Part shown: piece after piece, positions 8,459 to 17,940 of the stretch | How the letters are laid out: the number at the start of each line of letters is the position of its first letter | Numbering within the stretch: the first letter of the stretch is position 1 | Sequence record: MH791414.1 | Length of the DNA stretch: 64,000 bases | Strand: one strand, 5' to 3' | Notes under the pieces: generated by a model | Database searches by the model: none | Seen by the model: the letters and a program-made list of their open reading frames with translations, nothing else | What the model was told of the DNA's origin: nothing | Translations under genes and position numbers: made by a program

Positions 8459-9145
8459 TCACCAACCTTCCATCGGAAATTCCAAATAAACTTGTGCATT
8501 TTGACGAATTTCATTAGTGATCTTTTTTACCCGGTCTGTATTACGACTTACTCGACCAAACCAGCGCCAACCATTACCGACAGTTTTTGACCCGGTATGC
8601 CAAGTTTGCCAATCAAATTGAAGCAACGTCCGATCCGGTGCAGTATGCATTACCAGTTCACCACTGTCAATCTTTTCTAAAACTTCTTTATGCCATTGAC
8701 GATAGATCAATTCACCGTCAGGAACCTGAGTAAATTCAGATTCTCCAATTGCGAAGTGTGTGGGGCAAATATCCGCGTTAACGAGTCCTAGAATGTGTTC
8801 TGAGAGATATCGGGGGTTGTCGTAATCTGGTTGTCCAGCTGTGATGAAGTGTTGCCCTACGGGGATATCAGGGCGTGGTACGTCATCGTGATGATAACCG
8901 GGTATTGCCGGATACCATCCGGGCATGAGCATATGAACACGAGAATCGAAAACTACATCGTCGTATTGCCACTCTTTGGGTAACTTTGCAATGAAACTTC
9001 GAGTAATCGGTCCACCATGTATAATTGCAAAAGCAAGATCGCAGTTGAAGAACATTGGTTCATTTTTGATTTCGTCGTTAGACACATTTGTAGCAAACGA
9101 ACCACGATTTTGGAATTGAGAATTAAAAATTTTTGAACTTTTCAT
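8459..9145 (-). CDS. 2OG-Fe(II) dioxygenase-like protein
   Basis: H-x-D (GYHHDD), distal His (TWHTG) and downstream Arg (WRWFGR). Confidence 0.7.
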   Translation of the reverse strand: MKSSKIFNSQFQNRGSFATNVSNDEIKNEPMFFNCDLAFAIIHGGPITRSFIAKLPKEWQYDDVVFDSRVHMLMPGWYPAIPGYHHDDVPRPDIPVGQHFITAGQPDYDNPRYLSEHILGLVNADICPTHFAIGESEFTQVPDGELIYRQWHKEVLEKIDSGELVMHTAPDRTLLQFDWQTWHTGSKTVGNGWRWFGRVSRNTDRVKKITNEIRQNAQVYLEFPMEGW

Positions 9146-10392: not shown

Positions 10393-11325
10393 TTAACCTC
10401 CAAAAGGTCTAAGCATATGTTCATTTTTCAAAAACAAAGAAAGATAGTTTTCGCCTTTCTTGTTCTGTTCATCGTAAATCTGGATAACTTTTGTATAATT
10501 CTCCCAAGCATATTCACGGAACCAGCCGGATGTGATAGAGGTACAAACTTTTTCTAAAGCCATTGAGAAAGCCTGACCGGGGGAGAGCTTACCGGGAAAT
10601 GGGATTATAGACCGCTCTAAAGCCAAAACGCAAGCTTCTTCGTACACACCAAACAGCTTTGTTTGTTCTTCGCAATCAAAGAATTTTTGTTTTGATGTCA
10701 TGACTTCTTTACCATCCATCATGTAATTGCGATAGGCTGGTTTATCTTTTACTGCAATTGCTTCATGAATGGAGTCGTGGTCTATCGTATAGATATCATC
10801 TTTGAAAAAACTTTGTTTATCAACATTTAGCTTAGGATGACCATAATTCAAAGTCTCATCTTGTCGTTTTATATAAATTTGGTTTTCAATATCATTCATG
10901 ACTACACCGTGATCACGAAGATTATGAATCGTTTTCATAGTTTTTATGAAATTTCGTGTATTCTTCTTATATCGATGTGCCATTTTTATTGCTAAAAGAA
11001 CACCAAGAGGCGCATTCTGGATCACCCCATGTTTATTACCTAGGTAATTAGCAATCATATCATCAGAGGAACCGGGTTCGATGATATAGGCTTCGTGGTA
11101 GCAACACCGGGATTTCCCATCGTCTACAACGAAGGCACGGACGTTTTTAGATTGAACTCTAACGGGCCTTCCCATCATCAATTCTTCATATTCAGTCCAT
11201 TCCTCATCTGTTGCAATGAAGTCATAATCCATGTCTTTGTTTGGTACAAAATTATATCCAAGAAGAGTTGATAGCCCTTCTATCTCTGCGCGTGATCCTA
11301 TCTGAATCATTACCATACACCTCAT
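10393..11325 (-). CDS. putative nucleotidyltransferase-fold protein (conserved phage family)
   Basis: N-terminal IGSRA...DMDYDFI resembles the GS...DxD signature; conserved DHDSIHE and TSITSGWFRE segments; true start probably 11316 or 11310 (SD GAGGTG). Confidence 0.55.
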   Translation of the reverse strand: MRCMVMIQIGSRAEIEGLSTLLGYNFVPNKDMDYDFIATDEEWTEYEELMMGRPVRVQSKNVRAFVVDDGKSRCCYHEAYIIEPGSSDDMIANYLGNKHGVIQNAPLGVLLAIKMAHRYKKNTRNFIKTMKTIHNLRDHGVVMNDIENQIYIKRQDETLNYGHPKLNVDKQSFFKDDIYTIDHDSIHEAIAVKDKPAYRNYMMDGKEVMTSKQKFFDCEEQTKLFGVYEEACVLALERSIIPFPGKLSPGQAFSMALEKVCTSITSGWFREYAWENYTKVIQIYDEQNKKGENYLSLFLKNEHMLRPFGG

Positions 11326-11329
11326 AATA

Positions 11330-11345
11330 GGGGGTAACTACCCCC
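11330..11345 (-). terminator. GC hairpin / weak terminator between the peptide genes and the enzyme gene
   Basis: GGGGGT/ACCCCC stem, 4-nt loop, only TATTAT downstream. Confidence 0.5.
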
Positions 11346-11355
11346 CTTTATTCGT

Positions 11356-11574
11356 TTAGCAGCTACTTTCTTCCCAGACGTGGTTATCATCCTCGTCTAC
11401 AGTAAATCCTTCACCACCTTCACCATAACAAGAACTGCTCAACCAATCCTCGAACCGAATCTGACCATGTTCAATTTCCATACCATAATCATTCTGGCTT
11501 GCAAGTTCTCGTACTTCTTTAATCTTTTCCGCCAGTTCTTTGGCTTTTTCTATCAATTCTTGACTACGTGCCAT
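11356..11574 (-). CDS. 72-aa peptide with WLSSSC and terminal WEESSC motifs
   Basis: ORF track; SD AAGGA; helical N-terminal half, acidic Gly-rich C-terminal half. Confidence 0.75.
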   Translation of the reverse strand: MARSQELIEKAKELAEKIKEVRELASQNDYGMEIEHGQIRFEDWLSSSCYGEGGEGFTVDEDDNHVWEESSC

Positions 11575-11592
11575 TTTTATTTCCTTTTAATT

Positions 11593-11877
11593 TTAACATT
11601 CATCACTAGAGCTGACCCAAACGCCAACATCATTTACTTCATCACCCCAACCACGATATTCGCCAGCAGGATAATATGTTCGACCATACCCATAATCACC
11701 AACAGAGAAAACAACATTCTCCTTATCTGCAATAATGGTTGCAATATCTTCTAGCTGTTGTGACAGATACAGGGTGTTTTTAATTTTAATATTACCCGGT
11801 ATTGTCTTATTTTCCAATTCCAATTCCAGTTTTTGAATTTCAGATTTCAGTTTCTGGATAGATTCGTTAATTTCCAT
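11593..11877 (-). CDS. 94-aa peptide ending WVSSSDEC
   Basis: ORF track; SD AGGA; coiled-coil N-terminus, Gly/Tyr-rich C-terminus. Confidence 0.75.
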   Translation of the reverse strand: MEINESIQKLKSEIQKLELELENKTIPGNIKIKNTLYLSQQLEDIATIIADKENVVFSVGDYGYGRTYYPAGEYRGWGDEVNDVGVWVSSSDEC

Positions 11878-12907: not shown

Positions 12908-14751
12908 TCAAAAGAACAATCCCAACAATAACCGGACTGAAAATCAGTGACCCAATAACCCAAGCAAACGGATTTCGATTATATACATATGCGGCAGCTG
13001 CTACCAACAAAGTCATAACAATAAATAGAGGATCGAATATGTACATAATTTATTCCTCACATTGGAAAAATTGTTTCAATTCCCAATCGTACACGCATAC
13101 GCTAAATGGCAAATATCCACCTACATATTTTGCAAAGAACATATACCCTTGTGGTTCTTTTTGGAAAGGATCCTCGGTGACGAAAATATCTTGTTTGTTT
13201 TCGTTTGCAATACGGAAGATATCAACCAATTCTTTGTTAAGTTCCAAAATTTCATCGTCAATAGCCGAATTCAGAAAATCTTGTGGTTTGGTCATAATAA
13301 CTTTTTTCATTTTTTCATAGCCTCTTGTTGAGTTTCAATAATGCGGAATTTTTGAAGATTCGTGTTTTTGGAAAAAATCATGGGTGATACCAAACCGGTT
13401 TTAAAATTATAGGTTGAGATTACAGACCCGGTATCTATGTTAACACCATACCCAGACACACCACAAGTCATAATCACCCCAGATGCAAAATTTTCCCCTT
13501 GTACCCATTTACCTTCTAATGCAGCGTCGATTGCTTCATGCATATTCAGATTATACATATAATTGTTCCTTTTTTACTGTTGTGGGTATTTTGGGTGGTA
13601 TTCAGTAACCCAACTACATTGATACACTTTCTTTTCAACGATATCGTATTTGGTTGGGATCATATCCCGCCCAAATACAAAAAACATACACATCCAACCG
13701 ACTAACATACATTTGTAATACCATTTAAAACGGTCTTTATATGATATTGTCGCAATGAGTGCAATTATAATGGGGAGAATCAACCCCATTGTGGTTATAC
13801 CAACCGCCCACCAAAGACGCATCACCATCAAGTCTGTCATGTTAAACTCCTTATGAATTATTTCATCTTACTAAAAACAACGAGCATATCGTAATCGGAT
13901 TCTACTGGGTTACGCCAACATTCATTAACGCCATCCCAGATCCTTGGTCCGTGTATGATTGGATTATACTGATCTTTTCCAGAATAGCAAGCAATCAAAC
14001 CCAATTCTTTTTGGACCTTGGATGAATTCAACCATGCTAAGTGTGCAGACCCAAACAAATTTGAAAAATGATATACATCTTGGTGGTCTTTGTGATATGC
14101 GACAATGTAATATTGCCAGTCTTTTCCTAGAAACATTTTACTACCTCTTACTCTATACTAACAATCATTCTGCCACCACAAATTTGATTTCCAAACCGGA
14201 ATAAAATTCATTGTCAAGGTCAACCGGATACCACCCAGATTCCCAATATTCGATTGATCCTTTTTCGTTTATTTTCCAGTTTTCGGATTGGACACACCCG
14301 GTATTATCTACCCAAACCGCAACGAAAACACCGCTATCTGGTAAAATATTAGTCAGTCTCATATTATATTCCTTACCATACTTATTAAAAAGCCTGTACA
14401 CATATGGTACAGGCTTTTTCTAAAAGGTCAAGCGTTATTCATATACAATGACGGTTTTTTCTACCGGGAACACTTCTGGACAATCAATTTCGTCTGGTTC
14501 GTACTCATATGGACTTTCGTCTTGACATTCTGTAGAACCTTCAGACCAACCAGTCCGATAGAACTTGGTTACGCCCTCTTGTGTTACCGAAAATACTTGG
14601 TCATAAAACGTACTCCAACGACTCGTATCTACAATATCTTTTTCTACAGATTTAACAATAGTAGGAACTTCGAAACCATAATCCCCTGCTTCCAGATTCA
14701 TGATCGATTCGTATACCATATCTACCAAAAATTCTTTTTGAAATTTCATTT

Positions 14752-15939
14752 TTAATCTTTCCATTTATTTGGAACAAATTGTTCCGGATATTTACAAATT
14801 ACTTCCATAATAGCAGGGACAAGTTCAAGGTTTGTTCCTTGAAACATCTTCATCGCAATATTAAAGAACATCTGTTCATTTGCGAATGCACCCTTCATAT
14901 GAATCGCATACTCTCGGCGTTCCATACCAGAACATTTTGCATACTCTTCCTTTAGTTTCTGATATGCATTCCCAGCAACACCAATTACATGGTCTTCAAA
15001 ATCTTTGATCTTGGTAAGGGAATTAACATCGTCGATAAACAGTTGACGTAGATCATCAGACGCCCCCTTAGCAACACAGCAAACCAGCTCTTTGTTGTTG
15101 GTGATAGAATCCTTGGTCCGGTGTAGTGCAACGTAAGATTCGGTTTTCACCTTAACCCGAGTACCATCTTTAAATACCAGAATATACCCTTCGATACCCT
15201 TATCTTTATACATATTAGCAACTGCTTGCTCGATATTAGTACCTTCCACAAACATAAACTGATCTACGGAATATTTCAGGAAAACCGGAGACCGAAGAAG
15301 TTCGTTATTAGGGTAATACTCCCCAGTTTCACGATGCCGAACGTTCAAGATCTTCAGGCTTTCTTGCGGGTACAGAATAACGATTTGATTTTTTGGAGAG
15401 CACCATTCCAAATTCACAGTATAACCCGCATCTTCACAATCTTGAATAAACCCCATCAGGTCCTCACGATCTGGGTGATACAACCAACGGTTTGCATCGT
15501 TCGCCTGTTCGCTATGGAGTGACGTTTTACTCTTCAGAAGATAATTAGTACGGACGTTATCAGAAGGATCAACAAAATGGTATGAACTCATCAGACTACC
15601 ATCTGCTTTATCTTCATATCGATCAATATTGTCATATTCCAGTACAGGCTTTTGAAGTGCGGAGATACCACCATCCGTGATGTTCCAAGCTTGACGTTCA
15701 GCAAGGTTGAAAAACTTCTCCATAGGACGGCTGGCAATTCGATATGGTTCACCATTGACCATCTCAAACATGATACCACGACATTCTAGAGCGTCTGGTA
15801 GCATCCATTGGGTAAGACCGGCAATATGGTAGGAAAATACCCGCATATGATTACCAAAGGATGTGTAATGGTCTACAAAGAAGAAATATTTATCCTCTTG
15901 GTTACAAAGATTAATAAGGTTGTTGTACAATTGTTTCAT
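14752..15939 (-). CDS. rnlA: RNA ligase 1
   Basis: ECRGIMFE, SRPMEKFFN, K-x-DGSL (EDKADGSL), LKSK, EGY and KVKT motifs of T4 Rnl1. Confidence 0.93.
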   Translation of the reverse strand: MKQLYNNLINLCNQEDKYFFFVDHYTSFGNHMRVFSYHIAGLTQWMLPDALECRGIMFEMVNGEPYRIASRPMEKFFNLAERQAWNITDGGISALQKPVLEYDNIDRYEDKADGSLMSSYHFVDPSDNVRTNYLLKSKTSLHSEQANDANRWLYHPDREDLMGFIQDCEDAGYTVNLEWCSPKNQIVILYPQESLKILNVRHRETGEYYPNNELLRSPVFLKYSVDQFMFVEGTNIEQAVANMYKDKGIEGYILVFKDGTRVKVKTESYVALHRTKDSITNNKELVCCVAKGASDDLRQLFIDDVNSLTKIKDFEDHVIGVAGNAYQKLKEEYAKCSGMERREYAIHMKGAFANEQMFFNIAMKMFQGTNLELVPAIMEVICKYPEQFVPNKWKD

Positions 15940-17565: not shown

Positions 17566-17940
17566 TCAATTTTTGTTAAAATGTATGTTCCATCGTGGGT
17601 TGATCGATTCGATGAGTTGTCTTTCTTCCCAATATAGACTCATACTATCATCAACTTTCCGAACATACAACCACAAATTTTTACCACTACTGATAAAGTC
17701 GGTAATTATTTTGTTCTTTTCTACATTGCTCTGTTTTGGGTTTGCCCAGTTAACCACGTTTCTATAAGTATCAAACCTCTTCCATAGGTCTTTTGCTTGA
17801 CCTATGTACATGACTTGGTTCCCGTAGACAAACGCATACAGAACGTTTTGGTAGAACGTAGGGACAAGGAACTCTCTTGACAATAGCCCTTGTTTATCTA
17901 ACCCCATTTTCGCGACTTTTTTAAATCCTTCCAGCTTCAC
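17566..17940 (-). CDS. denA: endonuclease II (GIY-YIG)
   Basis: LYAF...YIGQAKDLWKRFDTY...EE..LI...NPRWNIH aligns with T4 DenA; start reassigned to GTG 17940 behind SD AAGGAG; lies between td and rnlA as in T4. Confidence 0.85.
   Translation of the reverse strand: MKLEGFKKVAKMGLDKQGLLSREFLVPTFYQNVLYAFVYGNQVMYIGQAKDLWKRFDTYRNVVNWANPKQSNVEKNKIITDFISSGKNLWLYVRKVDDSMSLYWEERQLIESINPRWNIHFNKN

Follow-up and report, generated by a model that had tools for sequence, protein, structure and literature searches.

A candidate two-part phage cassette: a polymerase-beta-fold nucleotidyltransferase and small acidic proteins that share a C-terminal Trp-Ser-Ser-Cys tag

The stretch of DNA considered here (the window, 64,000 nucleotides in all) corresponds to bases 1-64000 of Aeromonas phage Aswh_1 (MH791414.1; 100% identity, identical coordinates), a T4-like phage (Straboviridae, Ishigurovirus) with a genome of 229.7 kb. 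On its minus strand, about 3.4 kb downstream of RNA ligase 1 and embedded in a long series of small genes each annotated as "hypothetical", stand the genes for two small proteins, A and B, followed by a G/C hairpin and then by the gene for an enzyme with a nucleotidyltransferase (NTase) fold. The best explanation for this group is a phage-specific two-part cassette, in which a polymerase-beta-fold NTase is combined with an array of one to six (two here) small, acidic and predicted cytoplasmic proteins that end in the same short tag. The tag is near-invariant, the catalytic residues of the enzyme are in place, and the genes for enzyme and tagged proteins are tightly linked, from whichever side the linkage is approached, across unrelated groups of phages.

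Protein A (ASwh1_31, 94 amino acids (aa); 11593-11877, minus strand) ends in W-V-S-S-S-D-E-C-stop (11596-11619) and thus exemplifies an eight-residue class of the tag, W-x-x-S-S-x-x-C, while protein B (ASwh1_30, 72 aa; 11356-11574, minus strand) ends in W-E-E-S-S-C-stop (11359-11376), a member of a six-residue class, W-x-x-S-S-C, and carries a further, internal copy, W-L-S-S-S-C, at residues 44-49 (11428-11445). Both genes have a Shine-Dalgarno-like AGGA or AAGGA sequence 7-8 nt ahead of the ATG. The first-pass annotation of this DNA, made from the letters alone, had described two adjacent small genes with these tails and with the internal motif, and translation of the minus strand confirms that description.

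Counted from its Trp, the tag has the layout W-x-x-S-S, after which Cys and the stop codon follow either directly or after two further residues. Among 178 open reading frames (ORFs) of the family in related loci, the eight-residue form accounts for 132 and the six-residue form for 35, and among 144 representatives sharing no more than 50% identity the exact ending W-x-x-S-S-x-x-C is found in 135; the remainder comprise three with a shift to Ser-Ser-Thr, five with one extra residue past the Cys (a feature of about 4% of members) and a single one that lacks the terminal Cys. The variants in this set of representatives retain a hydroxyl at the position four residues after the Trp, where Ser may change to Thr. 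A profile from which the tail had been removed still retrieves 103 ORFs, and 102 of these have W..S(S)..C either right at the C-terminus or no more than three residues from it; the lone exception is one half of a frameshifted gene in RB69, the other half of which is tagged. The gene in question is of the A type and is split by a single frameshift into ORF139c and ORF138c, the second of which bears the tag; it is intact in a close relative of RB69 (locus L014). A rare Cys-less variant occurs at locus L062 (3511-3801), where an upstream ORF with the architecture of the family has two motifs resembling W..S-S and no Cys at its end.

In the 64-kb window a loose version of the tail pattern is matched by only three of 645 six-frame ORFs, two of which are the genes for proteins A and B, as against some three tagged ORFs on average at each enzyme locus, nearly all of them upstream and on the same strand, and chance is therefore excluded as the source of the association between tag and enzyme. 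The third match in the window, a 41-aa ORF (14652-14777, minus strand) that ends in W-F-R-S-S-Y-Y-C, overlaps both RNA ligase 1 (at its end) and ASwh1_41 (at its start) and probably fits the pattern by chance.

The small proteins that carry the tag belong to no Pfam, NCBIfam or PADLOC family and have no sequence match in the PDB. Their one catalogue entry is phrog_899, which protein A matches with an expectation value (E) of 2.5e-14 and protein B with an E of 1.8e-5, in both cases limited to the C-terminal 60-90 positions of the 221-position profile. Searching a set of 5.8 billion proteins with the single sequence of protein A retrieved the ZPAH1 orthologue alone, and an alignment was needed as the query to reach a deeper set. 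The profile search then gave 1031 A-type homologues (68-175 aa; 991 representative clusters at 50% identity), none of which has a Pfam domain and in nearly all of which the match extends to the final residue. Acidity is pronounced across the family (median isoelectric point 4.4, median net charge -8), and in roughly half of the members examined the terminal Cys is the only one. At least five sequence types can be told apart (the A type, the B type, a 65-aa type, a type of about 147 aa and others), and the tag is what they have in common. The B type, in which protein B is predicted to form one helix, is present at 27 loci, and the three members listed, all from different phages, each have both the internal and the terminal motif (3/3).

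An AlphaFold2 model of protein A (predicted local distance difference test, pLDDT, 89.3; predicted template-modelling score, pTM, 0.76) consists of a helical hairpin followed by a three-stranded sheet, with a Gly-rich Tyr-Gly-x-Gly loop that is invariant in the A type. The tag Trp and the first Ser are placed in the last beta-strand, while the final residues are modelled with low confidence (mean pLDDT 59), so that the last residues of the tag are probably exposed. Foldseek finds no significant solved-structure neighbour of this model; the weak and non-significant neighbours of its helical hairpin are Cys-dependent metal or thiol sensors of the CsoR/InrS type (E >1). The tag keeps two hydroxyls and a terminal thiol but lets the spacing between them vary, which suggests that chemistry at, or recognition of, a flexible end lies behind it, rather than packing alone. 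The first-pass annotation had taken proteins A and B for precursor peptides made up of a leader and a core. The tagged proteins, at 65-150 aa overall, do not bear this out: they are predicted to be folded and acidic rather than leader-core peptides, with the tag Trp of the A-type model built into a strand.

The enzyme (ASwh1_29) was originally described as a 310-aa protein, and an open frame of that length does exist (10393-11325, minus strand); the likely start is nevertheless at 11310, which gives a protein of 305 aa (10393-11310). This start is probably the true one because the GenBank start lies there, because a GAGGTG ribosome-binding site precedes it, and because homologues begin at the same point. 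The protein matches phrog_2141 (E 5e-116) and two Pfam domains of unknown function: an N-terminal DUF7277 (residues 6-94 in the numbering of the 310-aa frame, 11044-11310; E 8.6e-16, 58.9 bits against a cut-off of 27) and an all-helical C-terminal DUF7275 (residues 109-294, 10444-11001; E 7.9e-72, 241.5 bits, same cut-off). The N-terminal domain holds the residues expected of a catalytic site, namely a Gly-Ser turn (G10-S11), the carboxylates of D33-x-D35 and a third carboxylate, E78, all of them invariant across 34 aligned homologues. They are also kept in every N-terminus listed from the cluster of enzymes from 65 loci, including the forms in jumbo phages and in an Acinetobacter phage, and even where tblastn picks up the C-terminal domain alone. 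That domain, DUF7275, is the best-conserved part of the enzyme and the sole part that tblastn finds in distant relatives. Invariant Lys, Arg, His, Asp and Cys residues are plentiful in it (K114, H117, K128, R154, H163, H183, D184, H187, C232 and C261), and the conserved His/Asp segment pointed out in the initial reading, D-H-D-S-I-H-E, is there at residues 182-188, with H183, D184 and H187 invariant. At one locus in a metagenomic phage contig (L092, 3002-3914) two consecutive ORFs take the place of the single enzyme gene, with DUF7277 in one and DUF7275 in the other, which may be a natural split or a break.

The alignment of 34 homologues also served to build an AlphaFold2 model of the enzyme (pLDDT 88.8, pTM 0.83). 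Its top Foldseek match in the PDB is the tRNA-modifying toxin MenT1 (8an4; E 2e-3, probability 1.0), with template-modelling (TM) scores of 0.30 (query) and 0.46 (target) and a root-mean-square deviation of about 6 Å over 171 columns. The next matches are 5uvd, an NTase-like fungal protein, followed by Cid1, TUT4, CCA-adding enzymes and Pol beta/lambda, and most of the best matches are NTases. In the viral structure library BFVD the enzyme's own family comes first, with members from giant viruses, and poly(A) polymerase catalytic subunits follow. Because the Gly-Ser turn and the three carboxylates are invariant and the fold matches NTases, the enzyme is predicted to be a polymerase-beta-type nucleotidyltransferase with an intact catalytic site and a large conserved helical domain; the NTase-like N-terminus seen in the first-pass annotation is thus upheld by alignment, model and structure search alike. 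By sequence it stands outside the AbiEii/MenT, MNT, RlaP and HD-containing families. It has no sequence relative in the PDB (searched with the single protein and with a profile), in NCBIfam or in PADLOC. Membership of AbiEii/DUF1814 was rejected, as none of the 34 members gives a Pfam AbiEii match at E values up to 5. The idea that DUF7275 might be an HD-type phosphohydrolase, making the enzyme a GlnD-like transferase and remover, was likewise abandoned: Pfam gives no HD match, and there is no HD protein among the best 50 Foldseek matches. Comparison of the family profile with Escherichia coli GlnD, GlnE and Cca by hhalign, a test of limited power because the templates were single sequences, gave probabilities of at most 0.6%.

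How closely the two parts of the cassette travel together can be judged from viral contigs in IMG/VR. The first-pass annotation had proposed to check whether homologues of the enzyme are flanked by W..SS..C proteins, and this proves to be the case at 59 of 62 loci with an enzyme relative, each with one to six tagged ORFs on the same strand (about three on average). All but three of the 178 tagged ORFs (175/178) lie upstream of the enzyme on its own strand, with a median of 883 bases between their ends and the start of the enzyme match. The three loci without tagged ORFs are accounted for by too little upstream sequence, by replacement with tRNA genes, and by a divergent upstream relative that lacks the terminal Cys. 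The loci span T4-like phages, Otagovirus-like phages of 95-100 kb, phages of about 150 kb and jumbo phages of 350-390 kb, and the linkage is also seen in rV5-like phages. In RB69 the enzyme is ORF134c and the tagged genes are ORF136c to ORF139c, and the same pairing is found in Otagovirus psageK4e and in Acinetobacter phage KARL-1. When the linkage was approached from the other side, look-ups from four diverse small proteins showed a DUF7277/DUF7275 gene directly downstream on all four contigs; this reverse test rests on four contigs because the small-protein alignment retrieved T4-like loci alone.

The position of the cassette in the genome differs between phages. In RB69 it lies between e.2 and e.3, where the corresponding site of T4 is empty, and in Aswh_1 it lies near rnlA; the cassette therefore moves as a unit, and the linkage is not mere synteny of the T4 type. 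All-against-all clustering of the ORFs at 66 loci showed that the enzyme and the tagged families alone are common to different phage groups, and no third component shared across groups was found by this clustering. Deposited phage genomes (about 50,700) yielded the enzyme in 732 cases by tblastn. A search of 185,579 prokaryotic species, each represented by a single genome, gave five matches, all in metagenome-assembled contigs that are filed as bacterial, that also show the pairing, and that are probably phage DNA; the enzyme family is, in essence, viral. RNA ligase genes lie 1.5-3.5 kb from the enzyme in the window (14752-15939, minus strand) and at a few unrelated loci, L093 (2967-3614), L094 (9709-10237) and L080 (2016-2675). 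A general link with RNA repair was considered and dropped, given that an RNA ligase is near very few loci and tRNA genes are near 5 of 60.

What the two parts may do together can be approached from the fold of one and the tail of the other. Transfer of a nucleoside monophosphate (NMP) to a hydroxyl acceptor is an established activity of enzymes with this fold, and in one dedicated pair of an NTase and a small protein, MntA and HepT, the NTase oligo-AMPylates its partner (PMC7641770, PMC11586414). This precedent, together with an intact NTase, a near-invariant and partly exposed tag and a tight, mobile linkage, leads us to favour a reading in which the tag is the recognition and acceptor element of the enzyme and its serines are nucleotidylated, a proposal that we would put somewhat short of an even chance. 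The shared tag would then be a common handle by which a single enzyme recognizes all of its partners; NMP would be transferred to the Ser hydroxyls of the tag (protein O-nucleotidylylation), and the terminal Cys might act as a second recognition group or as a reactive one. The modification could turn a set of early and probably host-directed small effectors on or off, or bring them to maturity in some other way. The action of the enzyme on the tag, the choice of Ser as acceptor, the nucleotide used and the role of the modified proteins are all what we infer. More tentatively still, the cassette may represent a tagging chemistry so far unrecognized in viruses, in which the NTase modifies the W-x-x-S-S-(x-x)-C tag, possibly with a follow-on step at the Cys, on a diversifying family of small acidic effectors and thereby arms or times factors for host takeover or against host defences in many large lytic phages.

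Several observations weigh against the nucleotidylated tag. The solved folds closest to the enzyme (MenT1, Cid1, TUT4 and the CCA-adding enzymes) act on the 3′ ends of RNA and not on proteins (PMC10435456). In the model of protein A the tag Trp and first Ser are predicted to be structural and not free. Distant relatives of DUF7275 in Gordonia and Streptomyces phages and in Vibrio phage ValKK3 have no tagged ORFs nearby, and one T4-like locus (L012, 2618-3570) retains the enzyme and has seven tRNA genes where the tagged genes would stand; the enzyme can therefore exist without tagged partners. At that locus the last few codons of one tagged gene remain. A distant homologue of the enzyme in Gordonia phage Bachita adjoins a tRNA cluster.

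Some of these observations also belong to the case for an enzyme directed at RNA, which would resemble MenT, CCA-adding or terminal-uridylyl enzymes and extend the 3′ ends of tRNA or other RNA, with the tagged proteins serving not as substrates but as inhibitors or timers that dock by their tails, or as adaptors of specificity. This is the main rival, which we think rather unlikely, yet worth serious attention; such an activity might serve to seize or stop host translation, or else to repair RNA ends that host defences have damaged, with the differing bodies of the small proteins selecting the targets, and we give these purposes the same limited weight. All of the best solved-structure matches are to RNA-directed enzymes, with the viral poly(A) polymerase subunits next in line in the viral library, and one or more small genes upstream of an NTase reproduce the gene order of MenA-MenT (PMC7450476). 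The many invariant Lys and Arg residues of the helical domain, the few RNA ligase neighbours and the survival of the enzyme without tagged genes in some phages would all fit. Against it stand the low TM scores, the lack of any AbiEii/DUF1814 match in Pfam, and RNA ligase and tRNA neighbours that are confined to a minority of loci. A simple inhibitor would not need as many as six paralogues that all have an invariant Ser-Ser...Cys end, and hydroxyls that are conserved even when Ser gives way to Thr, together with a terminal thiol, suggest chemistry over docking alone.

The tag might instead have a function of its own within the small proteins, for example as a metal or redox site, or as a link between subunits made by the terminal Cys together with the two Ser residues and the Gly-rich loop. 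In that case the enzyme would not touch the proteins; it would make or alter a nucleotide-derived ligand that they bind, or would simply belong to the same early pathway. The placing of the tag Trp and first Ser in the predicted sheet, next in sequence to the invariant Tyr-Gly-x-Gly loop, is in line with such a site, as are the many members with a sole, terminal Cys and the faint resemblance of the hairpin to metal and thiol sensors. We nonetheless consider it improbable: several of the sequence types keep the tag without having the Gly-rich loop, the spacing from Ser-Ser to Cys is either zero or two with an occasional additional residue, which would be unusual for a rigid site, and no ligand or metal can be inferred from the sequence. 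Still less probable, to our mind, is a pathway akin to that of the ribosomally synthesized and post-translationally modified peptides (RiPPs), with whose loci the initial reading had compared this one. Here a Ser of the tail would be nucleotidylated and eliminated to dehydroalanine, attack by the terminal Cys would close a small thioether ring, and the modified C-terminal peptide would perhaps be released. A ring made by Ser activation and Cys addition would be reminiscent of lanthionine or aminovinyl-cysteine chemistry. Such a pathway might leave behind several paralogous "precursors" that stand beside a single enzyme and conserve a Ser...Cys end, the i, i+3 placing of Ser and terminal Cys in the eight-residue class and an internal tag in the B type that could mark a processing site. 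Against this, the small proteins are predicted to be folded, with the tag partly buried in the sheet, and the ring obtained from the Ser-Ser-Cys of the six-residue class would be implausibly small. Neither Pfam nor PHROG places a known RiPP maturase, protease or transporter family among the neighbours, nor is any lyase or cyclase linked, and the cassette stands among the early genes of strictly lytic phages.

Seen beside known systems, the cassette shares features with several of them. Enzymes of the MenT/AbiEii group, which are regulated through a partner (PMC10435456, PMC11375011), provide the top solved-structure match, have two lobes with an NTase domain and a helical C-terminal lobe, and are encoded downstream of a small partner gene. 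The cassette enzyme differs from them in having no Pfam AbiEii match and in its low TM scores; a family-specific C-terminal motif IV has been described for DUF1814/AbiEii (PMC7450476). The cassette partners, in turn, lack domains of the antitoxin type, come in arrays of one to six and have the W..SS..C end, and the setting is one of lytic phages rather than bacterial toxin-antitoxin loci. The closest precedent for the proposed mechanism is the type VII pair HepT-MntA, in which a polymerase-beta-fold NTase stands beside a small partner and a hydroxyl of the latter is (oligo)AMPylated (PMC7641770, PMC11586414). MntA is, however, a minimal NTase without DUF7275, whereas the cassette enzyme has this additional domain of 200 residues, and HepT is an HEPN ribonuclease modified on an internal Tyr, whereas the cassette partners are acidic and tagged with Ser-Ser...Cys; the cassette has no HEPN or MNT match in Pfam. 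The phage-encoded RlaP and CCA-adding enzymes are likewise polymerase-beta-fold NTases of large phages, RlaP chiefly of jumbo phages, and some lie near an RNA ligase (PMC7824862). They differ from the cassette enzyme, which belongs to another Pfam family (DUF7277/DUF7275) and whose linkage to RNA ligase is not general, and they are without tagged partners. A review of the NTases of jumbo phages covers RlaP, the CCA-adding enzymes and Thg1 and makes no mention of the DUF7277/DUF7275 family.

Reversible nucleotidylation of a protein by an enzyme with an NTase fold is known as an activity switch from GlnD and PII and from GlnE and glutamine synthetase, from which the cassette differs in that hhalign detects no similarity between the enzyme families and that the partners are unrelated. 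In C-terminal tag systems, such as RiPP precursors and pairs of sorting signal and processing enzyme, diverse proteins have one short terminal motif and a single linked enzyme. The cassette follows the same genomic logic, with one to six paralogues and a conserved motif beside one enzyme, and departs from these systems in the sequence of its tag, in the fold of its enzyme, in its viral and cytoplasmic setting and in having no linked protease, transporter or known maturase.

Full-text searches of the literature, including the Pfam and PHROG identifiers, turned up no description of the pairing of this enzyme with tagged proteins. In catalogues the enzyme family figures solely as domains of unknown function and the small proteins solely as a PHROG of unknown function, and every member of the cassette is annotated as "hypothetical". 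An NTase with a dedicated small-protein partner is a known kind of system; this one would be categorically new if the chemistry of the tag were to prove new. The cassette is in any case common, given the 732 genomes with the enzyme and some 990 clusters of the A type at 50% identity, and its carriers include phages in laboratory use or considered for therapy (RB69-like Mosigvirus, JS98-like phages, T4-like phages of Aeromonas, Otagovirus phages of kiwifruit canker, Acinetobacter phages and jumbo phages). Genomes betray a dedicated system of modification or recognition by just such a pattern, a near-invariant terminal tag linked to a single enzyme. Working it out could bring to light a new post-translational modification, a new means of phage control over an RNA-modifying enzyme, or host-directed effectors of a new family; the eight-residue C-terminal tag might itself serve as a useful handle.

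The hairpin between protein B and the enzyme, noted in the first-pass annotation along with a weak U-tract, is present as described: a G/C-rich stem-loop (11329-11347) with a stem of 6-7 bp stands between the stop codon of protein B and the ribosome-binding site of the enzyme, and the poor U-tract that comes next on the gene strand overlaps this site. The 65 nt upstream of the enzyme start have a minimum free energy of -16.8 kcal/mol. The hairpin fails as a conserved hallmark, and with it the likeness to RiPP loci in which a stem-loop separates the precursors from the enzyme, and a stem-loop was rejected as a conserved part of the system: a significantly stable upstream hairpin occurs at just 14 of 64 related loci. 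Because comparable hairpins are so restricted, its role is probably local, in the processing or stability of the transcript or in translational coupling.

Some further features of the surroundings deserve mention. The 228-aa protein ASwh1_24 (phrog_1843; 8459-9145, minus strand), which has no Pfam or PDB relative, is encoded on the downstream side of the enzyme gene, at a distance of 1-2 kb, both in the window and at 18 T4-like loci, including ORF132c of RB69, despite the differing positions of the cassette; it is absent from the Otagovirus and jumbo-phage loci and may accompany the cassette as a third passenger in T4-like phages only. At a locus in an 84-kb phage contig (L089, 164-3493), a gene resembling ribose-phosphate pyrophosphokinase and an NAPRTase gene cut by a LAGLIDADG-like segment have the cassette about 2.5 kb downstream, and these neighbours look like a phage NAD salvage module. 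Within the window itself, the region of endonuclease II (denA; 17566-17937, minus strand) is entered in GenBank only as a misc_feature "similar to endonuclease II", an annotation which suggests that the denA gene of Aswh_1 is disrupted.

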